The translations under genes were made by a program, and so were the position numbers. Shown here piece by piece: positions 843 to 23,841 of a DNA stretch of 64,000 bases. The notes under the pieces were generated by a model. The model ran no database searches. It was given only the letters and a program-made list of their open reading frames with translations, and was not told the DNA's origin. The DNA lies in the sequence record OR142618.1; one strand, given 5' to 3'. The stretch's first letter is position 1. Each line of letters begins with the position of its first letter.

Positions 843-1118
843 ATGACTGACATTAATCCAAATTCTCGCCACTACTCTGCTGAAGACGTCCGGCGAATTA
901 AACAGTTAGTTTCTGAAGGCATGCAAGTCATGCAAGAAATTGAAGATTTAAAAACTGGACTAGCAGAAACAGTTAAAGCAATTGCAGAAGAAGTAAATGT
1001 TAAGCCTTCCCAGCTTAATAAAGTTATTAAAATCGCACATAAACGTTCTTTAAACGAAGAACTAGATAAGATTAATGAAGTAGAAGAGATTCTAGACGCA
1101 ATTAAAGAAGGTCGTTAA
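843..1118 (+). CDS. small dsDNA-binding protein / transcriptional regulator (T4 DsbA-like)
   Basis: GGAG RBS before ATG 843; helical pattern EIEDLK..L...VKAIAEE..VKPSQLNKVIKIAHK. Confidence 0.55.
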   Translation: MTDINPNSRHYSAEDVRRIKQLVSEGMQVMQEIEDLKTGLAETVKAIAEEVNVKPSQLNKVIKIAHKRSLNEELDKINEVEEILDAIKEGR

Positions 1119-1130
1119 TATTTTCAAAAC

Positions 1131-1160
1131 AAGCCGTGCTTTTGCGCGGCTTTTTATTTT
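1131..1160 (+). terminator. intrinsic terminator
   Basis: aagccgtgc-tttt-gcgcggctt followed by a T-tract. Confidence 0.7.
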
Positions 1161-1171
1161 GTAGGACAACT

Positions 1172-3583
1172 ATGTACATCGATATTTTCGAAGATAAAAA
1201 AAATGAAATACTTCTAGTTGCAGAACGATCTGCAGGCAAACGAATATACAAACAATACCCTATAGATCATACGTATTACATATTAGATGCAAACGGACCG
1301 TATAAGGATATATTCGGTAATAATGCTAAAGCCATTAAGCCATCTAGCATAAATGAAAAAATGACTCAAATGAAAATGCTAGATTTTTCGCAAACGTGCG
1401 AAATAGACGTCAGGCCAGAATTTAGATGCCTGGAAGTAAACTATAAGAATGCACCTATGCCAGATTTGCATGTTGCATTCTTCGATATCGAGACCGCGTT
1501 TGATCAAAAACGCGGTTATGCCGACCCAGCTGATCCTTTTAATCCCATTATATCAATATCTGTATATTTGCAATGGATGCAGCAAATGGTTTGCTTAGCA
1601 TTAGCACCAGAGACTATATTGCCAGAAGATGCACAACGCATAGCATCAGAAGTAGGCGAAACAATTATATGTAAAAATGAAAAAGAAATGCTAAGTATGT
1701 TTATTGACTTAGTAGAAGATGCAGACATTTTATCAGGTTGGAACTCAGAACGTTTCGATATTCCTTATACTTTTAACAGAATTGTAAAATTATTAGGTAA
1801 GAATGAACTAAGAAAATTATGCCTTTGGAATCTTATGCCCAAGAAGCGCAATATTGAACAAGAAGGCGGCAGTAGTTTTGTTACATTCGAAACATTTGGT
1901 AGAATACATTTAGATTATCTCCAATTGTATAAAAAATATAATTACGAAGAACGTCATAGTTACTCGTTAGATTCTATTTCGGAAATCGAACTAGGTGAAC
2001 GAAAAGTTCCATACAACGGAACGTTAGACAAACTTTATAAATATGATTTTAAAAAGTTTTTAGAATATAACATTCAAGATACTCGACTCCTAGATAAGTT
2101 AGATAGAAAATTAAAATATATAGATCTAGCTTCCACTATTGCACATAGTAATTGCATTCCTATCCCTACTGTTATGGGTGCAGTAGCTACAACCGAACAA
2201 GCAATTATAATCGAAGCACATAATAACGGCATGGTAGTGCCATCTAGGCAACGTTTTAAAAACAATGATACACTTAAAGCTGCGGGCGGTTGGGTAGCAT
2301 ATCCTAAAGTAGGACTGCATAGAGATATTGGCTCCAGTGACTTAAATTCTCTGTATCCTTCTGTGTTAAGGGCACTAAACATGAGCCCAGAAACTATTAT
2401 CGGACAAGTTCGATTAACGCTTACTAACCCTGCAATCGAAGAATGGTGTGCAAAAGGCGGAACAAAACATACATTTGCTGCATGGTGGAACGATAGGTTT
2501 ACCACTTTAGAAATGGAATATGTGTTAAACAAAGACAGGGGTACTATATTAACGTTAGATATGGCAGACGGGCGCTCGTTTGAACTGTCAGGTGCCGAAA
2601 TATACGAATTAGTATTCAACAGTGGTCAGAATTGGCATATCAGTGCTAACGGAACTATATTCACACAAGACAGAGCAGGTGTAATTCCGTTACTACTTAC
2701 AAGATGGTATGCAGAACGTAAAGGGATGCAGAAAATTGCATCAGATTATAATTCTTTAGATAAAGAACACCATAGCGACAAAACTGTATTTTTAGAAGAT
2801 AAATCAGTATTAGATGGAATATGCGTAGGCGAAGTTGAATTAGCAGACCATTATAATATTAATGATGTATATGTTGCAGCTACATTAAAAAATCTTGTCG
2901 AATCAAAAAATTGGCAAGAAGTAGCAATATATATGAAAAAGTATGGTCTAGAAGTGTCGTCTGACAATTCAATTGTTATGTCAGATTCCCATATGCAAAA
3001 CGAATATTACGAATATTGGGATAAAGCCCAGTTAGTTCGTAAAATTGGATTGAACAGCTTATATGGCGGACTACTTAACGAACATTCTAGATTCTACGAT
3101 AAAAGACTAGGACAGAGTACTACACTAACAGGGCGCTGTATCACTAGACATATGGCTTCTAAAACAAACGAAATGTTCACTGGCATTTATGATCACGAAG
3201 GCGATTGTGTAATTTATGGCGATACAGATAGTGTAGATGGATCAACTATCCTAAATACTTCTCTAGGTAAAATAACTATAGAAGAATTGTTTAATGTGTC
3301 TGACAAGCATGTAGTCCATGCAGAAAAAGAATTTGCTTCGAATGAAGATGTTATGGTAATGTCGTGGGACAATTCTGCAAAACAACCATATATGGGGCAT
3401 ATAAACTATGTGTACCGCCACGAAGTAGAAAAAGAGTTATTCGAAATAGAAGACAACAACGGAAATAAAGTTATAGTAACCGAAGATCATTCTATTATGG
3501 TTATACGTAATGCAGAACTACTAGAGGTTAAACCAACAGATTTAACAGACAGTGATATAATATTATCTATTGTATATGAATAA
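1172..3583 (+). CDS. family B DNA polymerase, N-terminal fragment fused to split-intein N-half
   Basis: ExoI FFDIET, ExoII WNSERFD, ExoIII YNIQD, motif A DLNSLYPS, motif B KIGLNSLYG; motif C YGDTD is followed directly by the intein. Likely start is ATG 1172 after an AGGA RBS. Confidence 0.95.
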   Translation: MYIDIFEDKKNEILLVAERSAGKRIYKQYPIDHTYYILDANGPYKDIFGNNAKAIKPSSINEKMTQMKMLDFSQTCEIDVRPEFRCLEVNYKNAPMPDLHVAFFDIETAFDQKRGYADPADPFNPIISISVYLQWMQQMVCLALAPETILPEDAQRIASEVGETIICKNEKEMLSMFIDLVEDADILSGWNSERFDIPYTFNRIVKLLGKNELRKLCLWNLMPKKRNIEQEGGSSFVTFETFGRIHLDYLQLYKKYNYEERHSYSLDSISEIELGERKVPYNGTLDKLYKYDFKKFLEYNIQDTRLLDKLDRKLKYIDLASTIAHSNCIPIPTVMGAVATTEQAIIIEAHNNGMVVPSRQRFKNNDTLKAAGGWVAYPKVGLHRDIGSSDLNSLYPSVLRALNMSPETIIGQVRLTLTNPAIEEWCAKGGTKHTFAAWWNDRFTTLEMEYVLNKDRGTILTLDMADGRSFELSGAEIYELVFNSGQNWHISANGTIFTQDRAGVIPLLLTRWYAERKGMQKIASDYNSLDKEHHSDKTVFLEDKSVLDGICVGEVELADHYNINDVYVAATLKNLVESKNWQEVAIYMKKYGLEVSSDNSIVMSDSHMQNEYYEYWDKAQLVRKIGLNSLYGGLLNEHSRFYDKRLGQSTTLTGRCITRHMASKTNEMFTGIYDHEGDCVIYGDTDSVDGSTILNTSLGKITIEELFNVSDKHVVHAEKEFASNEDVMVMSWDNSAKQPYMGHINYVYRHEVEKELFEIEDNNGNKVIVTEDHSIMVIRNAELLEVKPTDLTDSDIILSIVYE
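3230..3580 (+). mobile_element. split intein N-half (IntN, ~117 aa)
   Basis: Begins SVDGSTIL (block A) right after YGDTD; block B VTEDHSIM; ends at a stop with no block F/G. Confidence 0.92.
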
Positions 3584-5258
3584 AGAATATTATCAGTCAT
3601 ACGCAAAAGAATTAAAAAAGAATAATAAGAAAGAATACAATCGTATTCTTTCTTTGTATGAGCCTGTATTCGATAAATGGGTTGCATTCAAGTATTATAT
3701 AGAAGGAATATCGCCGCCTGTATGTAAAGAATGTGGTAATAGAATAACTGTTTCGGCAAAACAAGCAGAATATCACACAGAATGCAAATATAATAAACAC
3801 AAGTATTCATTTGATAAATTTATAAAATGCATAGATGATGACCAATACATATATTGTGTGTGGAATGGATATATTCCGACATCTGACAATATAACATACA
3901 GATGCACTAAACACGGCATAATTGTTCAAAAACTTAGTTCTAGACTAAAAGGTCACAAATGCCAAAAATGTTCAGCTGAGCGTAAAGTAAGTCTAGATAA
4001 CTTTAATAACTGGAAAACGCAGTGTTCTAAAATACATAATAATTTTTATGATTATTCTGTATCTACTGATTTTACATTCTTAACAAAAGATGTATCTATT
4101 AAATGTCCAATACATGGAATATTTAAACAAAAAGCAAACGTCCATCAATCAGGTCACGGTTGTAAACAATGCTCGTTCGAAGCCATCGGTCATAGATTAT
4201 CATATGACACAGATTCTTTTATAGAAAGAAGTAACAATGTTCATAATAATTTTTATGACTATACCAAAACTATATACACTAACATTAGAGATAAAGTTAT
4301 TATAACATGTCCGATACACGGCGACTTTAATCAGATAGCATATTATCATACTGCCGGACACGGTTGTCAGAAATGCGATTTAGATAAAGTAGCAGAAACT
4401 ACCTATAGATCTAAGGCAGAAATAGAAATATTTGATTTAGTTAAATCTTATTGCTCAGATACAATTCATTCATACAATAAATTCGGGTTCGAATTAGACA
4501 TATATGTTCCTAGTAAAAATCTTGCAATAGAATATAATGGACTTTATTGGCATTCTTCTAAACATATAGAAACTGATCAAAAGTATAAAACATACCATCT
4601 TGATAAAACCACTACATGCGAACAAAATAATATCCAATTATTACACATTTTCGACAACGAATGGCATACTAAAAAAGATATATGGATCTCGGTGATAAAA
4701 AATAAACTAGGTTTATCTAATAAAATATATGCAAGAAAAACAGAAATTAAAGAAGTTAATTTCGATGATGCAAAGCAATTCGCCGAAACGAATCATTTGC
4801 AGGGTCATGCACAATTTCGGCATGCATACGGATTGTATTATTCGGATCAATTAGTTTCTTTATTAACAATTGCAAAGCCCAGGTTTAATAAAAATGCAAA
4901 CTGGGAAATAGTAAGATTTTGTAACCTAAATAACACAAGTGTAATAGGTGGGTTTTCTAAATTATTAAAGGTAGTTTCTTGTAATTTTACAGGCAAGATA
5001 GTATCATATGCAAATAGGCGCTGGTCCGCAGGAAACGTTTATGAAAAAAACGGATTTGCCAAAACTTCAATAATAGCTCCTGGATTTTATTATACTGACT
5101 TCAAAGATACATATAATAGATTATCTTTCTCTAAAGACAAGGCAAAAGTTAAATTAAAAAATTATAATAATTCAGTTAGCGTAGTAGAAAATATTTACGC
5201 AAACGGATATGGCAGGATTTGGGATTCAGGAAATATTGTTTATACAAAGGATTTATAA
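3576..5258 (+). mobile_element. free-standing homing endonuclease (Zn-ribbon repeats + Vsr/Hef-like nuclease + GNAT-like C-terminal domain)
   Basis: Repeated CPIHG.F.Q....H..GHGC..C modules; nuclease SKAEIEI...ELDIYVP..NLAIEYNGLYWH; C-terminal NHLQG...EIVRF...GGFSKLL...YANRRW...IWDSG. Lies between the intein halves. Confidence 0.85.
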
Positions 5259-5513
5259 ATGCATAATCTAACAAAACACCTTTTAGGTGTATTTTCTGCA
5301 AAAACAGAAGACGAAGAATATAACAGTGCAAAAAGAGCGTTAGAAGAATTAAACAAAAATATAAAAGAAAGAGATCCTAATAAATTTAATGTGTCTTTAG
5401 GAAAGGTATCTAAAGTAACTAATTTAGGAAAAAAGAAACAATATGTATACGATATAGGGATGAAAAATCCCGATAATCCGTATTTCTTTGGAAATAATAT
5501 ATTAGTTCACAAT
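5259..5513 (+). mobile_element. split intein C-half (IntC, 85 aa)
   Basis: Ends His-Asn (cac aat 5508-5513); +1 residue is Ser. Confidence 0.92.
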
Positions 5514-6398
5514 TCTTGCTATTTTACTGCATGGCCTGCAGTAAAAGACCTTGTAGAATCCGGCGAAATGGAATGGGATAAAGATACTGTCATTAAATTA
5601 TACGACAACGTTTCGTCGCAAGTAAGTGATACATTTCCAGAATTTTTAAAACAAACATTTAATGTTCCATATAAAAACTCAGAAGGTGTTATTAAGTCAG
5701 GTAGGGAAATTGTAGCTACTTCCGGTCTTTTTATTAAAAAGAAACGTTATGCTGCTATGATGTATGATAAAGAAGGTACTAGATACGACGACGAAAACAG
5801 CCCAGGAAAAGTAAAAGCAATGGGTTTGGACCTACGTCGGTCAGATACGCCTAAATTTGTCCAAACATTCCTTATGGAAATTCTAGTTATGGTGCTAACA
5901 CATAAAACAGAAGATGAAGTAATAGAATATATTAGAGAATTTAAAAAAGAATTTAATAAAATGAAACCGTGGGAAAAGGGAATGCCAAAAGGCGTCAACG
6001 GTATCAGTACATATGAAGATAAATTAGAAGAACACATGAATAAAAAGTTAGCAGGAAGAGAGTCTAGAATCACTGTCCCTGGTCACGTGTCTGCTGCGAT
6101 GAATTGGAATAAACTAAAGCTTATCAATAAAGACCTACATACTCCTAAAATCTCAGATGGTCAAAAATGTGTTGTTTGTTATTTAAAAGAAACAGCAGAC
6201 AATCATTTTACTAGTATAGCATATCCTGTAGATGAATTGCACTTACCAGAATGGTTTACGTCTTTGCCATTTGATGAAGATTTAATGAGAGAAAAAGTAG
6301 TAGATAACAAAGTTAAGAACCTTTTAGGTATTCTAAAATGGGATTTTAGTAAAACAGAAGAAGCTGCTGCACACTTCGATTCGCTGTTTGGTTGGTAA
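5259..6398 (+). CDS. split-intein C-half fused to family B DNA polymerase C-terminal fragment
   Basis: Block F VYDIGM and block G ILVHN|S, then SCYF restoring YGDTDSCYF; later KKRYA and KAMGLD..RSDTP polymerase motifs. Confidence 0.95.
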   Translation: MHNLTKHLLGVFSAKTEDEEYNSAKRALEELNKNIKERDPNKFNVSLGKVSKVTNLGKKKQYVYDIGMKNPDNPYFFGNNILVHNSCYFTAWPAVKDLVESGEMEWDKDTVIKLYDNVSSQVSDTFPEFLKQTFNVPYKNSEGVIKSGREIVATSGLFIKKKRYAAMMYDKEGTRYDDENSPGKVKAMGLDLRRSDTPKFVQTFLMEILVMVLTHKTEDEVIEYIREFKKEFNKMKPWEKGMPKGVNGISTYEDKLEEHMNKKLAGRESRITVPGHVSAAMNWNKLKLINKDLHTPKISDGQKCVVCYLKETADNHFTSIAYPVDELHLPEWFTSLPFDEDLMREKVVDNKVKNLLGILKWDFSKTEEAAAHFDSLFGW

Positions 6399-6420
6399 TC
6401 AAAAACTATACTTTGTACAC

Positions 6421-6449
6421 TTGCATTATGAAAATATTTAATGTATAAT
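6421..6449 (+). promoter_or_regulatory. sigma70-like promoter
   Basis: TTGCAT-N17-TATAAT. Confidence 0.7.
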
Positions 6450-6478
6450 TCACACACATCTTAGGAGAATAATAAGTA

Positions 6479-7225
6479 ATGATTGTAGACAATTTAAAGG
6501 ACGTAGTTCGTAACACTCACGGTTTGGGTTTTATAGATACTGTTAAAATTATTGGTTCTGTAAATGAAACTAAATTAGAAGCTATGTCAACCAATAAAAC
6601 TGTAGTTATGTACGGTTCTTTAAAAAAATCCATTCCGGGGTTAGACGATACTGTAGGTTTAAGTAGAATGTCTGTACTGAGCGGTATGTTAAATTTCCCA
6701 CCATATTCGGGAGATGATGCTGAAGTTTCTATTAAGAAACAAGAACGTAACGGTGAAGAAATTCCTGCAGAAATTGTATTTTCTTCTTCGACGGGTCATA
6801 AATCGTCGTACCGGTTTATGGCACGAGATACAGTAGACGAAGTGCTAAAAGTTCCGCCGTTTAGAGGAGTTGTGTGGGATATAGTTATTCAACCTACTAA
6901 ACAAGCGATGAAGGATCTTCAATATTTTAGTGCTGTATTGGGTTCTTATGAATCTAACTTTTTAGTTAAAGTAACAGACGGTGTTTTAGAATTCCACATA
7001 GGTACCGGTGCTACTAGCGACCGCACCGTTGTACCATTTGCAAAAGATGTAAAGAGCACATTACGCAATAACTGGTCCTGGCCATTACCAGAAGTGTTAG
7101 CAATTCTAAAAAACGCAGATAGTGGCAAATGTACTATGTCTATTTCTAGCCAGGGTGCATTAATGATTGAACTCGATACTGGGTTAATAGAAGTTCAATA
7201 TATTCTTCCTGCAAAAAGTGCATAA
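6479..7225 (+). CDS. probable sliding clamp / polymerase processivity factor (gp45/PCNA-like)
   Basis: 248 aa with a clamp-like alternating alpha/beta pattern, directly downstream of the polymerase; ends YILPA. Confidence 0.6.
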   Translation: MIVDNLKDVVRNTHGLGFIDTVKIIGSVNETKLEAMSTNKTVVMYGSLKKSIPGLDDTVGLSRMSVLSGMLNFPPYSGDDAEVSIKKQERNGEEIPAEIVFSSSTGHKSSYRFMARDTVDEVLKVPPFRGVVWDIVIQPTKQAMKDLQYFSAVLGSYESNFLVKVTDGVLEFHIGTGATSDRTVVPFAKDVKSTLRNNWSWPLPEVLAILKNADSGKCTMSISSQGALMIELDTGLIEVQYILPAKSA

Positions 7226-7228
7226 ATA

Positions 7229-7489
7229 ATGATCTTACCTGCTCGTAAATTAGTTAAATTGCAATACTATATTGTACAGGAATCTTACAATTCTATAGGT
7301 AGACCAATAACTACAGTTACTCTTGTATACAGAAAATATATATTTTTTACAAAGAAAGAAAAAATTATATTCGAGCGTATTAAGAAAACAGACAATTTGT
7401 ATTATAAACAAGAATCCGAAAAAGAGTTGTGTGAACAACTAAGTGTATGGGCAAAAAGAACATTAAAAATATATGATATAGGGCAATAA
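7229..7489 (+). CDS. hypothetical protein
   Basis: ORF coupled to the upstream stop and followed by a terminator. Confidence 0.55.
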   Translation: MILPARKLVKLQYYIVQESYNSIGRPITTVTLVYRKYIFFTKKEKIIFERIKKTDNLYYKQESEKELCEQLSVWAKRTLKIYDIGQ

Positions 7490-7504
7490 TTGCCCTATAT
7501 TTTT
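7476..7504 (+). terminator. intrinsic terminator
   Basis: atatagggca-ataat-tgccctatat + T-tract. Confidence 0.7.
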
Positions 7505-7561
7505 CATTTATAAATAAATTAACCTAAATACGTATGCACTAAAGAATAATTAAGGAATATA

Positions 7562-9184
7562 ATGAAAAATTTATCAAACAGTCAAAAAGATTATGCGATC
7601 TATTTGCCTGCAATTAGTGGGTTTTACACAAAACAATTAGACAGTTCCATTAACGATCCGTCTACAAGAAAAATACCTAGCTTTCCTAATGGATATAATA
7701 CTCTTAATTTTTTAGATCCATCTAGCGATACTTTCTTTTACGGGTATGGGTTATATTCTGCAGGCCATGCAGAACTGTCTTTATCTAGAACTGATGCAAA
7801 AGAATGGATGATCCAAGCCAGGGACAAAACACAAACAACAGTTATTGCAGATTCGGGTGGTTTCCAGGTAGCTACTGGTGTAATTAAATTAAACTGGGAT
7901 GATTTTAAAGGAGCTAGCGGAGATAAAATAAGAAATGAAATTTTAAAATGGTGTGAACATACCGCCGACTGGTCAATGACACTAGATGTTCCTGCGTTTG
8001 CTGCTACTCCTCCGTACAGTTCAAAAACCGGTCTTAATAAATTTGAAGATACATTAGATTATTCTCTTCATAATTTACATTATTACATGAAGAACAGAAC
8101 TCCCGGCGCAACTAAATTCCTTAGTGTATTATCAGGATCAGATGTAGATACATCTAAAATTTGGTACGACAACGTAAAAGCATTTAGTGACCCCGCTAAA
8201 GTAGTAGAAATGGGATATCCAGCTAGTCATACACTTGAAGGGTATGCATTTGCTGGTATAAACATGAGAAATATGTATTGTGCTCTTTCTCGATTCTTAG
8301 ATCTAATAGATGATAATATTATTTCAGATAAAAACTGGATACACTTTCTTGGATTAGGCAGGACTGATTGGGCTTGTTTCTTAACATCTATTCAGCGAAA
8401 TATAAGAAAACATTATAATCCCAATATTAACATAAGTTTTGACGCGGCTTCTCCGTTTGTTTCTGTGGCATACGGTCTTGCATATAACTATAATTATTTT
8501 AATCCCAAACGGTGGGGATATAATATGGATTCTGCCCCAGACAGCAGAGAGTTTAGTGATAAGGATATTCCTATGCCGTTTATGAGTCCTATTATGGAAA
8601 AATTATCATTAAAAGACATATGTCCATATCACAATGGTTATGGTATAATAAATGGCGTTAAAAATGCAAACTTTACAAAAGAAGATGTAGAAACTGCTCT
8701 TAAAGAAGGAAAAGATGCAGAATACGTGCCGCCTAGCGCAAATAAAAATGGTAAAGTAGGTAAAACCAGTTGGGATTCACTTAGTTACTTATTAATAATG
8801 AATCACAATGTTTACAACCATATAGCTGCAATCCAAGAATCTAATAGATTAGTCGATATAGAACGGTTGCGAGTTAAAGTAGATTACCGAGATTGGACTA
8901 GAGATAAAAAGAAAGGTACTATAGAAGTAAGTAATCACGTCCCTAGTTCGATTTTATATTTTGACCATTTCGTAGAAGTATTGCTAGATCCGAGTACTCC
9001 TAATAAGCGACAATTACTAGAAGATTATAGACCTATGCTAGACAGCATTAGTTTCGGTAATTATAACTCAAACTCATTTAACAGTCTTTTTGATGTAGAT
9101 GCTACTGCAATTGAAGATGAAAATAAGTTTGCAGACATAAACGACGAAAAACTAACTGAATTAGAACAAGGATTAGACAATTAA
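7562..9184 (+). CDS. tRNA-guanine transglycosylase-fold protein, probable DNA 7-deazaguanine insertase (DpdA-like)
   Basis: TGT signature ADSGGFQ, MTLDVP, HFLG, SFDAASP; clustered with QueE and QueD-like genes. Confidence 0.75.
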   Translation: MKNLSNSQKDYAIYLPAISGFYTKQLDSSINDPSTRKIPSFPNGYNTLNFLDPSSDTFFYGYGLYSAGHAELSLSRTDAKEWMIQARDKTQTTVIADSGGFQVATGVIKLNWDDFKGASGDKIRNEILKWCEHTADWSMTLDVPAFAATPPYSSKTGLNKFEDTLDYSLHNLHYYMKNRTPGATKFLSVLSGSDVDTSKIWYDNVKAFSDPAKVVEMGYPASHTLEGYAFAGINMRNMYCALSRFLDLIDDNIISDKNWIHFLGLGRTDWACFLTSIQRNIRKHYNPNINISFDAASPFVSVAYGLAYNYNYFNPKRWGYNMDSAPDSREFSDKDIPMPFMSPIMEKLSLKDICPYHNGYGIINGVKNANFTKEDVETALKEGKDAEYVPPSANKNGKVGKTSWDSLSYLLIMNHNVYNHIAAIQESNRLVDIERLRVKVDYRDWTRDKKKGTIEVSNHVPSSILYFDHFVEVLLDPSTPNKRQLLEDYRPMLDSISFGNYNSNSFNSLFDVDATAIEDENKFADINDEKLTELEQGLDN

Positions 9185-20751: not shown

Positions 20752-21105
20752 ATGATCGTCAGCGAGATTATATATTCTATTTTCATAGCTGCATTAATAA
20801 CAGTTATGACTATACTATATATAAGTCTCAGAATAATAACATGTAAGATATTAAATAAGTCATTAAAGATTTCAACTAATGTAATTATATATGGTACCTC
20901 TAATATAGAATATGTATATATTCCTGAAATAAAATATAAATTTCTTTCTTTTAAAATAACACATTCTGGTTTAGTTATGTTTGACAAAGAGTTTGGATTT
21001 AGGACACTAAACGATGCCATAAATGCATTAAATATGTATGTAGACACCGATATTATAAAAATAGTATATAAAAAGGTACCCACATTTTATACTTGGCACG
21101 AATAA
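20752..21105 (+). CDS. membrane protein (possible member 3)
   Basis: One TM segment; GF.TLNDAINAL..Y. Confidence 0.55.
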   Translation: MIVSEIIYSIFIAALITVMTILYISLRIITCKILNKSLKISTNVIIYGTSNIEYVYIPEIKYKFLSFKITHSGLVMFDKEFGFRTLNDAINALNMYVDTDIIKIVYKKVPTFYTWHE

Positions 21106-22601
21106 TGGATAATTTTGATATAGAATTAAAAGAACTCATAAAAAATACAAATCCTAACGCATTAGGAAATGTAGTAAAAAGTAAAAAAGAAATATTTGAG
21201 GAATTAGTTCGTCGAACTAATTCCTTTCTTCGTGACGACGTTTCTGTAACAGAAAGGATTCATATATACTTAAATCCAGCTGATAATGTTTACTGTAAGT
21301 ATGATAACAAACGGACACTAAAGCGAAATAAAGATACAAAACAAACCCAATACGGATTTTGCGGAAATAAAAGTAAATGTAAATGTCATATGGAATGGTC
21401 TTTAAAAAATCATCCAGGTATGACACAATCCGGAAAAGAAAGTATGAAAACAAAGAGGATAAAAACTTGGATAGAAAAATACGGTGTCGATAATCCATCT
21501 AAGTCAAAAGATATTATTTCAAAACAGCAATTAAGTAAAAAACATATAAAGCCAGATCATAGAGCTATAAAGGAGTTGGGATATAAAAAAGTAGTAGAAC
21601 GACTTTCTAATATACTCACCCCTACGTTTAGTATAGACGAGTACGAAGGGTGCTTTAGAAAAAATGTGTATGACTGGGTATGCAATGCATGCGGAAATAT
21701 AGTTATCGGACACGTAGATTATGGGTCTACTCCGAGGTGCAATGTTTGTAATCCTATAACAAAGTCTGCCGGCGAGAATGAAATATCTAACTATATAGTA
21801 TCGCTAGGATTTGATGTGATTAACAATGACCGAACTATATTATCTAACAAAGAATTAGATATAGTAATTAAAGGTACAAACATAGCAATAGAATATAATG
21901 GTTGTTATTGGCATTCTACAAAACACAGAAAAAAATCATATCATGTAGATAAATTTATAGAATGCAGAGATAAAGGAATAAAGTTAATACAAATTTTAGA
22001 TGTAGATTGGATATCAAAACAAGACATAATAAAATCAAGGTTAAAATCTATTTTAGGTTGTAGTGATAGAATATATGCAAGGAATACAACTATAAAAGAA
22101 ATAACATTTAACGAATCTTTAACTTTTTTAGAAGAAACTCACATCCAAGGTTCTTGTCAATCATCTGTAAGACTAGGTCTATACGACAATGAGAATTTGT
22201 TAGTAGCCGTAATGACATTTGGGAAATCTAGATATACAAAAGAGGAATATGAGTTACTTAGGTATGCTAGCAAAAATACTGTTGTAGGAGGAGCCAGCAA
22301 ACTTCTTAAATATTTCATAAAAACCTATTCCCCCAAATCTATCATTACATACGCAGACAGGTGCTGGTCAGATGGAAATTTATATAAACAACTTGGGTTT
22401 ACAAATGTAACTAAGAATGACAGAAATACAGGATATTGGTATATAAAAGACAACATAAAATATCATAGATCTAATTTCATAAAATCTAAGATTTCTAATA
22501 AAAATAATTTACATCTAAGCGAATCGGAAATAATGGATAGTTTAGGTTATTTAAAATATTACGATTGCGGCAATTACAAATATACATTGCAGGTACGCTA
22601 G
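21105..22601 (+). mobile_element. free-standing homing endonuclease (Vsr/Hef-like nuclease + GNAT-like domain)
   Basis: KYGVDNPSKS motif, CxxC pairs, KSAGENEI...ELDI....AIEYNGCYWH, HIQG...ELLRY...GGASKLL...YADRCWS...YDCG. Confidence 0.85.
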
Positions 22602-22656: not shown

Positions 22657-23841
22657 ATGTCCACTAAAACCCTAGAAGAACGCATCATCCGCGCCCGTGT
22701 TCAGTTGCTGTTGAACCATCCGTTTTTCGGGACCTTGGCGCTGCGCCTTAAACTAGTCGAGGCGAACGACTGGTGCCCTACTGCTGGTACTGATGGACGC
22801 CATCTTTATTATAATACCAAGTTCCTCGAAGACTTGGACGATAAGGAACTTATCTTCCTCATCGGTCATGAGGTAATGCACGTCGTCTACGACCACATGG
22901 GGCGGCGCGGCAGCAGAGAGCCTAAACTGTGGAACTGTGCTGCCGACTTTGTTATCAACCTCGAATTGCACGATATGAAGATCGGCAAGCTTATCCACCG
23001 TCCGGGTACTTGCGAGCCGTGCTTTGATGAAAAGTACCGCGGAATGTCCGCTGACCAGATCTATGAACTAATTAAGAAAGATCCGTCACTAAAAGATAAA
23101 GATAGCTTCGACGTTCACCTCGAACCCGGCGGCGCCGGGAATGAAGACGGCGATGCTTCTGGCAAATCCGGTCCTATCCCTATGTCTGCAGATGAGCAAG
23201 CTGCTCTTCGGGACGAGATCACTGAAGCTGTTCTTCAGGCTGCTAAAGCTGCTGGTGTCGGCAACACTCCGGCAGGTGTGCGTCAGATGATCAGTGACAT
23301 CACTGAACCTAAACTAGATTGGCGCGAATTGCTAAACCAGACTATTCCGTCGCACATTAAATCCGACTATATGTGGACTCGTCCGTCGCGGAAGAGTTGG
23401 GGAACTGGTGCGACTCTGCCGGGTCAGATTGTTGATGACAAAATCGATGTTATCCTGGCACTAGACGCCTCTGGTTCGATTAGCTCTTCTCAGCTAAGGG
23501 ATTTCTTAGGGGAAGTGTTAGGAATTATGGAACAGTTTAGTGACTTTTCCATACAAGTGCTAACGTTTGATACTAGAGTGTATGAATTCCGAAAATATAC
23601 TCCCGACAATGCAGACGAAATCTATGAGTATCCCCTTAAAGGCGGCGGTGGTACCGATTTTGTGGCTGTGTTTAACTTCCTTAAAGATACGCTCACTGAA
23701 CCGCCGCATCAGTTAGTATTCTTCACTGACATGGAAGTGTACGACTACGGCGATCCTAACTATTGCGATACTGTGTTTATAAACCACGGTCGCAAAGGTG
23801 TAACTGCACCGTTTGGCATCACCATCGACTACGACGAATAA
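22657..23841 (+). CDS. metallopeptidase-like + von Willebrand factor A protein (DUF2201-type), partner of the MoxR ATPase
   Basis: TAGTDG, HEVMH zincin motif, MIDAS DASGS, GGGGTDF, FFTD. Confidence 0.88.
   Translation: MSTKTLEERIIRARVQLLLNHPFFGTLALRLKLVEANDWCPTAGTDGRHLYYNTKFLEDLDDKELIFLIGHEVMHVVYDHMGRRGSREPKLWNCAADFVINLELHDMKIGKLIHRPGTCEPCFDEKYRGMSADQIYELIKKDPSLKDKDSFDVHLEPGGAGNEDGDASGKSGPIPMSADEQAALRDEITEAVLQAAKAAGVGNTPAGVRQMISDITEPKLDWRELLNQTIPSHIKSDYMWTRPSRKSWGTGATLPGQIVDDKIDVILALDASGSISSSQLRDFLGEVLGIMEQFSDFSIQVLTFDTRVYEFRKYTPDNADEIYEYPLKGGGGTDFVAVFNFLKDTLTEPPHQLVFFTDMEVYDYGDPNYCDTVFINHGRKGVTAPFGITIDYDE

Follow-up and report, generated by a model that had tools for sequence, protein, structure and literature searches.

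This study analyzed polB, the only T4-type replicative DNA polymerase gene of Pseudomonas phage Callisto, in a 64,000-nucleotide stretch of sequence record OR142618.1 (hereafter the window, with positions counted from its first letter and all features on the plus strand). The results indicate, with a probability that we place at roughly 85%, that polB is a fractured gene: its motif C is interrupted by a split, cysteine-less intein that would have to be removed by protein trans-splicing, and a free-standing homing endonuclease gene lies between the two intein halves. This reading is based on the anatomy of the locus, domain matches, homology to the PolB1 intein of Aeromonas phage Aes123, a profile match to the homing endonuclease I-Bth0305I, and population data.

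Window positions 1100-6500 were 100% identical to Callisto (OR142618.1), a PA5oct-like jumbo phage of the genus Wroclawvirus, and 98.5-99.1% identical to ten other PA5oct-like records, among them PA5oct, MIJ3, PAC2, Ettore, Paride, Deifobo, Cassandra, 30-2, and 30-3. The Callisto record labels all three open reading frames (ORFs) of the locus "hypothetical protein"; the PA5oct record labels them "DNA polymerase", "putative Hef-like homing endonuclease", and "DNA polymerase". The first ORF, comprising the N-terminal polymerase part (polB-N) and the N-terminal intein fragment (IntN), runs from ATG 1172 to the stop codon at 3581-3583. The ORF listing places its start at GTG 1136; ATG 1172 is the likely start because a terminator-like hairpin occupies 1131-1152. 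The second ORF encodes the 560-aa endonuclease (ATG 3576 to TAA 5256-5258), and the third, of 379 aa, encodes the C-terminal intein fragment (IntC) joined to the C-terminal polymerase part (polB-C; ATG 5259 to stop 6396-6398). At the first boundary, ATGAATAA (3576-3583) contains the endonuclease ATG 5 nt before the polB-N stop, which gives an 8-nt overlap of the ORFs. At the second, TAAATG (5256-5261), the endonuclease stop abuts the IntC ATG, and the two ORFs share one frame with a single TAA between them.

The original prediction, made from the sequence alone, had described a polymerase ending at YGDTD and continuing into IntN at 3230-3580, a 560-aa endonuclease ORF overlapping the polB-N stop, and an IntC with SCYF directly after TAAATG, together matching a fractured-gene layout. 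All of these elements were recovered: the first by the ORFs, a Ser1 codon at 3230, and a Pfam match; the second by the position of ATG 3576 within ATGAATAA; the third by ATG 5259 and Ser+1 at 5514; and the layout by the order of N-part with IntN, free-standing endonuclease, and IntC with C-part on one strand. The junctions read ...VIYGDTD/SVDGSTILNT... and ...NNILVHN/SCYF.

The 686-aa N-extein (1172-3229) spans the exonuclease, palm motif A, and fingers through YGDTD of motif C. It matched Pfam DNA_pol_B_exo1 and DNA_pol_B as well as the DNA polymerase family PHROG 262 (E 1e-142), and it aligned to RB69 gp43 residues 175-437 and 555-627, ending exactly at YGDTDS (RB69 621-626). The C-extein (5514-6398; 294 aa plus the stop codon) begins with Ser+1 (SCYF) and contains the rest of the palm and the thumb; it matched PHROG 262 and 1918 and aligned to RB69 gp43 residues 698-849 (palm and thumb). 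Without the intein, the exteins are collinear with RB69 gp43, which by these alignments identifies the product as a family B DNA polymerase of the T4 gp43 type.

IntN (3230-3580, stop 3581-3583) is 117 aa long and has a net charge of -14; it carries Ser1 in block A (SVDGSTILNT), the NX motif YRHE, and block B VTEDHS (TxxH), and it ends just past block N4. The IntC core (5388-5513), with 42 aa and a net charge of +4, carries block F (YVYDIGM) and block G (NNILVHN). Both lack cysteine, and the Cys count is zero across the complete 117 + 85 aa of the intein; the nucleophiles are Ser1 and Ser+1, and the +2 extein residue is Cys. In the Pfam Intein_splicing profile (PF14890, 155 positions), aa 693-798 of the N-piece covered positions 2-93 and aa 23-85 of the C-piece covered positions 100-155. 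This complementary coverage indicates that the two pieces are parts of one HINT domain and that the break lies at the loop where endonucleases are usually inserted. IntN exceeded the cut-offs of both PF14890 (37.5 versus 35.8 bits) and TIGR01445 (32.1 versus 24.5 bits), and it matched the Aes123 PolB1 intein (PDB 9HTH) at E 1.5e-13.

VTEDHS and YRHE were conserved over nine aligned alleles including Aes123 (the alignment also held PTm1, CP21, SCTP-2, and metagenomic alleles), and H84, N85, and S86 of the IntC ORF were invariant in 20 relatives. An (R/K)H NX motif is a mark of Ser1 inteins (PMC10189870). The split appears natural, with the halves in separate ORFs, each in frame with its own extein, in all 10 genomes compared. 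On these sequence criteria, the element is assigned to the class 1, cysteine-less (Ser1/Ser+1) split mini-inteins, is located inside motif C at YGDTD^S, and belongs as an allele with the cysteine-less PolB split inteins Aes123 PolB1, CP21, and LCGC14, for which trans-splicing has been demonstrated. Its homology to the active Aes123 PolB1 intein suggests that the Callisto intein trans-splices. The domain matches, this homology, and the population data given below support the earlier claim that trans-splicing is needed to rebuild the catalytic motif.

An alternative that we consider improbable is that the intein halves hold the polymerase fragments together non-covalently, in the manner of the intein-free 43A/43B pair of Aeromonas phages, and that the splicing chemistry is dead. 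Splits of gp43 without an intein are indeed tolerated by T4-like phages: in Aes123, gp43A and gp43B1 are separate ORFs, and extra splits occur in the relatives L018, L019, and L021. However, the break in Callisto falls between the catalytic DTD and the next Ser, where an unspliced 200-aa HINT domain would occupy the active site. All splicing residues (Ser1, RH, TxxH, HN, and Ser+1) are retained, IntN has accumulated 19 synonymous and 4 nonsynonymous variable sites, and the homologous Aes123 intein splices (PMC11923092).

These variable sites were obtained from a comparison of 10 Wroclawvirus genomes, which are independent isolates from Poland, the UK, Switzerland, Japan, Spain, and elsewhere. 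All 10 share the 5401-bp layout, with no indels, three intact ORFs, and both junction strings unchanged. The ratios of synonymous to nonsynonymous sites were 71:13 in polB-N, 19:4 in IntN, 48:31 in the endonuclease, 2:1 in IntC, and 31:0 in polB-C. Purifying selection acts on every part of the locus; the exteins are the most constrained and the endonuclease is the least.

The endonuclease gene (3576-5258) belongs to PHROG 559 and 3339 and has more than 5000 homologues. Its AlphaFold 2 (AF2) model, with a mean predicted local distance difference test score (pLDDT) of 91.7, consists of three parts. The N-terminal region (3576-4400) has a helical segment followed by C-H-C-C zinc-ribbon repeats of the DUF723/DUF4379 type and is presumed to be the DNA-binding part. 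The residues concerned are C110/H113/C129/C132, C177/H180/C196/C199, and C245/H248/C264/C267, and the model has three or four repeats. This assignment is supported by a Pfam DUF723 match at aa 152-201, invariant Cys and His columns in the alignment, and repeated strand-strand-helix units in the model.

The second part (aa 278-377; 4407-4706) is an EDxHD/Vsr-like nuclease domain with invariant E282, D308 (ELDIY), E319 (AIEYNG), and H326 (LYWHS). A profile built from 46 family members matched the catalytic domain of I-Bth0305I (PDB 3R3P) over aa 278-370 at E 7.3e-6, and the alignment paired ELD308IY and AIE319YNGLYWH326S with the Asp196 and His213 motifs of that enzyme. The profile was required for this result, as a phmmer search of PDB with the single sequence returned no match; an NCBIfam scan of the endonuclease gave nothing useful. 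Relatives of the endonuclease carry precomputed Pfam Vsr or MTES_1575 matches, and a VSR signature has been reported in PHROG 559 (PMC11878797). The label "Vsr/Hef-like" in the original prediction is consequently upheld by the profile match and by Taylor et al. 2011 (PMC3239194), who placed Hef-type phage enzymes in the EDxHD/Vsr-like family. The MIJ3 record and PHROG 559, by contrast, apply the label "HNH", which is wrong for an enzyme with a Vsr-like nuclease core; no HNH family was matched in Pfam or NCBIfam scans of the endonuclease.

The third part (aa 380-560; 4713-5255) adopts a GNAT fold. A Foldseek search with the endonuclease model identified the phage Mu protein Mom (8BV8) as the best PDB match (E 4e-6), followed by many GNATs, and the family profile weakly matched 2BSW (E 0.02). 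The hits of the whole model were dominated by this domain, so that the nuclease fold received no independent confirmation from Foldseek. A literature search found no paper linking Mom or GNAT domains to homing endonucleases.

Several features of the gene concern its expression. Its start codon, ATG 3576, has no Shine-Dalgarno sequence, and a perfect 12-bp RNA hairpin, AAGAAAGAATAC-AATC-GTATTCTTTCTT (3627-3654), lies 50 nt into the ORF. The hairpin region has a minimum free energy of -22.1 kcal/mol (z -4.25); it is invariant in the 10 genomes and therefore offers no covariation evidence. This hairpin may dampen endonuclease expression, and, with the missing Shine-Dalgarno sequence and the overlap with the upstream stop, is consistent with tight, coupled, low-level expression.

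Five places in the Callisto genome match this endonuclease family. A second member, a 502-aa ORF at window positions 21093-22601, is 37.5% identical to aa 272-557 and matches PHROG 3339 at E 4e-115. The ORF directly after it (22657-23841) carries the PHROG label "HNH endonuclease" (phrog_1314).

We compared the locus with further relatives, comprising metagenomic sequences and 56 IMG/VR loci. Intein homologues at motif C of polB, with IntN 34-38% identical, occur in Aeromonas phages Aes123, Aes508, and AS-gz, Tenacibaculum phage PTm1, Campylobacter phage CP21, Salicola phage SCTP-2, and Lak megaphages. The same three-ORF cassette is present on other polB backgrounds in Aes123, PTm1, and CP21, where it is annotated as "intein-containing split DNA polymerase precursor" and "VSR endonuclease". 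The intein lineage was found in four states: contiguous; split with approximately 110-170 nt between the halves; split around an Aes123-type Vsr endonuclease (approximately 320-375 aa); and split around a Callisto-type endonuclease. The last type also occurs in a syntenic gut-metagenome relative (L014; 560 aa, 42% identical) and in L063 and L065. The similarity between the Callisto-type and Aes123-type enzymes was confined to the nuclease core (blastp E of approximately 1e-3). Because the two types are barely alike, different endonuclease lineages must have occupied one split site.

This turnover bears on the role of the endonuclease. The cassette may have become fixed and domesticated, with an endonuclease that no longer homes and is kept for another purpose, such as the exclusion of co-infecting phages or a GNAT/Mom-like function. 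All 11 database relatives carry the cassette, which leaves no empty sites to invade; purifying selection continues to act on the endonuclease gene (48 synonymous versus 31 nonsynonymous sites); the C-terminal domain of its product resembles the DNA-modifying Mom; and the genome holds five copies of the family. Nevertheless, we consider domestication improbable: the succession of type A, type B, or no endonuclease at the split site of relatives fits a normal homing cycle of gain and loss, and evidence for another activity of the endonuclease was not found.

The relatives also bear on a recoding explanation, in which a +1 shift at ATGAATAA and readthrough of TAA 5256 would produce a single polypeptide containing a large intein with a nested endonuclease. 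This would fit the shared frame of the endonuclease and IntC ORFs, between which there is just one TAA, and L014 has the same arrangement. However, two separate recoding events would be required. The junction geometry of relatives varies freely (a 28-nt overlap, a 12-nt gap, overlaps of 8-59 nt, and different frames; L016 and L022 have a short spacer with a hairpin ahead of the endonuclease start), and many relatives have both intein halves without any endonuclease. EDxHD enzymes are, moreover, known as free-standing or intron-encoded proteins and not as intein-nested ones (PMC2677866, PMC3239194). Recoding is accordingly very improbable. The final possibility is that an artefact or an RNA intron accounts for the interruption and that the mRNA is contiguous. 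This had been named at the outset as what would refute the prediction, and group I introns are indeed frequent in phage polB genes (PMC11878797); it can be practically dismissed, since ten independent assemblies share the layout, the insert is flanked exactly by in-frame intein blocks, and no Rfam intron family was found at E<=1 across 900-7600, where the only matches were sub-threshold, leader-like ones on the upstream terminator hairpin.

Five points weigh against the fractured-gene reading. IntC alone scored under the cut-offs of PF14890 (22.2 versus 35.8 bits) and TIGR01443 (15.4 versus 15.6 bits), as expected for a 42-aa piece. The active-site match of the endonuclease is imperfect, with HMMER aligning an invariant His341 to the last Asp (Asp222) of EDxHD; the nearby Asp335 is conserved in part only. 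No intein-free allele was present among the 11 close database relatives, and ongoing homing is thus not visible. We found no paper with experiments on the Callisto/MIJ3 allele. Finally, wild-type Aes123 splices at an efficiency of only approximately 30% in vitro, and the efficiency of the Callisto intein cannot be presumed.

On the fractured-gene reading, we propose the following mechanism. The canonical endonuclease-insertion loop is where a free-standing endonuclease gene would have broken the intein. Co-transcription of the three ORFs is probable because no terminator was found from 1152 to 7475. The output of the endonuclease is probably kept low through its start codon without a ribosome-binding site, translational coupling, and the 5' hairpin, and both polymerase precursors would be abundant. 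Electrostatic attraction between IntN, which is acidic (-14), and the IntC core, which is basic (+4), would then lead to their mutual capture and folding into one HINT domain. Class 1 splicing would proceed via oxyesters: Ser1 would undergo an N-O shift, transesterification to Ser+1 and cyclisation of Asn85 would follow, and the last step would be an O-N shift. The reaction would join D687 to S86, thereby restoring YGDTDSCYF in a 980-aa polymerase. The endonuclease would cut the intein-free polB of co-infecting relatives, and the cassette would be copied by recombinational repair.

The element also includes an N-terminal extension of IntC. The original prediction had described a long, 85-aa IntC with a charged helical N-terminal extension, and the analysis agrees: the first 43 aa (5259-5387; MHNLTKH...DPNKF) contain 16 charged residues with a net charge of 0, two predicted helices, and no intein motif, and the remaining 42 residues align with other alleles, whose IntC is 38-47 aa long. 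The AF2 model of the IntC ORF has helices at residues 2-13 and 19-37 at low to moderate confidence (pLDDT 50-69), and the core is disordered, as expected of a split-intein fragment without its partner. The extension has no counterpart in Aes123, PTm1, CP21, or the cis alleles. At least 13 distinct metagenomic loci, however, carry an IntC of 75-88 aa with a common pattern, in which a hydrophobic LKxxLxxLL helix, an acidic turn, and a second amphipathic helix precede the conserved SLxRxKVKxV core.

A start at GTG 5391, which would leave the extension untranslated, was considered and rejected: the frame stays open in at least 13 divergent loci, whereas with this base composition a run of 43 open codons would arise by chance at approximately 2.6% per locus, and the ribosome-binding site of ATG 5259 (AAGGA, 7 nt upstream) is the better one. 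A small hairpin at 5276-5290 was not significant (z -0.75). A link of the extension to the presence or type of endonuclease was likewise rejected, as long and short IntC were each found with type A, type B, and no endonuclease. The occurrence of the extension with either endonuclease type or none indicates that it is a trait of an intein clade and not endonuclease debris.

The charges of the fragments are also reversed relative to Aes123, in which IntN carries +8 and IntC -11. Under a capture-and-collapse model, this reversal predicts orthogonality. We tentatively suggest, as a possibility that we rate well below even odds, that the two-helix extension is a functional accessory module of a distinct PolB split-intein clade, which together with the reversed charges would represent a naturally orthogonal cysteine-less subtype. 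The extension could keep the disordered IntC precursor soluble or tune capture, setting the rate or timing of polymerase maturation.

Motif C of polB holds two insertion points that lie two residues apart, YGD^TDS and YGDTD^S. A 957-aa JGI metagenome protein (P0141), which is an N-terminal polB fragment, has a cis mini-intein at YGD^TDS (ending VHN/TD) and, two residues on, an IntN at DTD^S. These tandem inteins show that the two points are distinct and can be filled together. The YGD^TDS point with Thr+1 is used by the inteins of L004 (SCTP-2), P0134, P0137, P0158, L053, L056, L062, and L066.

An extra upstream polB break was observed in L018, L019, L021, and L002 (Aes123), which have a 538-563-aa piece and a 181-235-aa piece bearing IntN; the gap between these pieces holds small ORFs or a 326-aa ORF in some loci, as in the intein-free Aeromonas 43A/43B split. 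On the contig of P0135 (JGI 3300059473), a 422-aa ORF with a Cas12f1-like TNB (TnpB-type) domain lies approximately 1.4 kb downstream of the fractured polB. In Callisto, a 248-aa ORF lies just 3' of polB (window positions 6479-7225); it is labeled "proliferating cell nuclear antigen" in PAC2 and "structural protein (ESI-MS/MS)" in PA5oct, and a Pfam scan returned no match. Metagenomic relatives keep an ORF of 243-247 aa in this place beside polB.

The original prediction had also proposed that this may be a new split-intein pair, and this claim was not supported. Imam et al. 2019 (Front Microbiol; PMC6892783) described the same intein in phage MIJ3 as a computational prediction, with blocks A, N2, B, N4, F, and G and the layout orf153/154/155. 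The IntN and IntC proteins of MIJ3 are 100% identical to those of Callisto, and the DNA is 98.8% identical over 5.4 kb; the two are the same element. That paper calls the endonuclease HNH, in contrast to the EDxHD/Vsr-like assignment made here, and is silent on the absence of Cys, the IntC extension, the charge pattern, and endonuclease turnover. The PA5oct omics paper mentions neither the polymerase, inteins, nor homing endonucleases, and a P. aeruginosa phage transcriptome paper contains nothing on the locus either. The new elements of this study are the EDxHD/Vsr-like assignment, the zinc-ribbon and GNAT/Mom-like domains, endonuclease turnover, the clade-wide IntC extension, and the charge reversal.

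The finding concerns an essential replication enzyme of a phage group under consideration for Pseudomonas therapy, and this enzyme would require protein trans-splicing; MIJ3 provided the published precedent, and the class of mechanism is an established one. Inteins that are at once naturally split, mesophilic, and free of cysteine are rare and in demand, and those of PolB at DTD^S have already been mined for biotechnology (PMC12707363, PMC11923092). With approximately 34% identity to Aes123 PolB1, opposite charges that suggest orthogonality, and an unusual IntC extension, the Callisto allele is a reasonable candidate for the intein toolbox. The remaining interest lies in the clade-specific extension, the charge reversal, and the GNAT/Mom-like domain; the element is otherwise ordinary within the fractured-gene and cysteine-less PolB class.

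Among known systems, the locus resembles the fractured genes of Dassa et al. 2009 (PMC2677866) in the order of N-part with IntN, free-standing endonuclease, and IntC with C-part on one strand, and also in its Vsr-like endonuclease, phage setting, and hairpin near the endonuclease start. In contrast, PolB is outside their eight enzyme types, their inteins are Cys1, and a 27-51-nt non-coding spacer with control elements precedes their endonucleases, whereas Callisto has an 8-nt overlap and a hairpin inside the ORF. The endonuclease is similar to I-Bth0305I and other EDxHD enzymes (PMC3239194; PDB 3R3P) in its conserved E, D, E, and H positions and in the combination of a DNA-binding N-terminus with a nuclease. 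It differs in having zinc-ribbon DUF723 repeats at the N-terminus instead of NUMOD or helix-turn-helix modules, an extra 180-aa GNAT/Mom-like C-terminal domain, and His341 at the Asp222 position.

The PolB mini-intein of Salicola phage SCTP-2 is homologous (its IntN part is 37.6% identical) and is located in a related jumbo-phage polB. However, it is contiguous (cis), is inserted two residues upstream at YGD^TDS, ends in KN with Thr+1, and contains no endonuclease. A further known system is the Aes123 PolB1 family. Aes123 PolB1 itself is naturally split and cysteine-less, trans-splices in vitro, and gave rise to the engineered CL and CLm inteins; other alleles being studied are CP21 PolB1, LCGC14 PolB2, and GOM-OPS-1 PolB2 (PMC11923092, PMC12707363). 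Callisto shares with this family the host protein, the DTD^S insertion point, Ser1 and Ser+1, the absence of Cys, the split at the endonuclease loop with an endonuclease gene between the halves, and an IntN of approximately 115-120 aa, which is 34% identical to that of Aes123. Unlike Aes123, Callisto has no additional 43A/43B split in polB; its endonuclease belongs to another lineage (560 aa versus approximately 330-350 aa for the Vsr type), and its IntC, through the 43-aa helical extension, reaches 85 aa compared with 38-46 aa.

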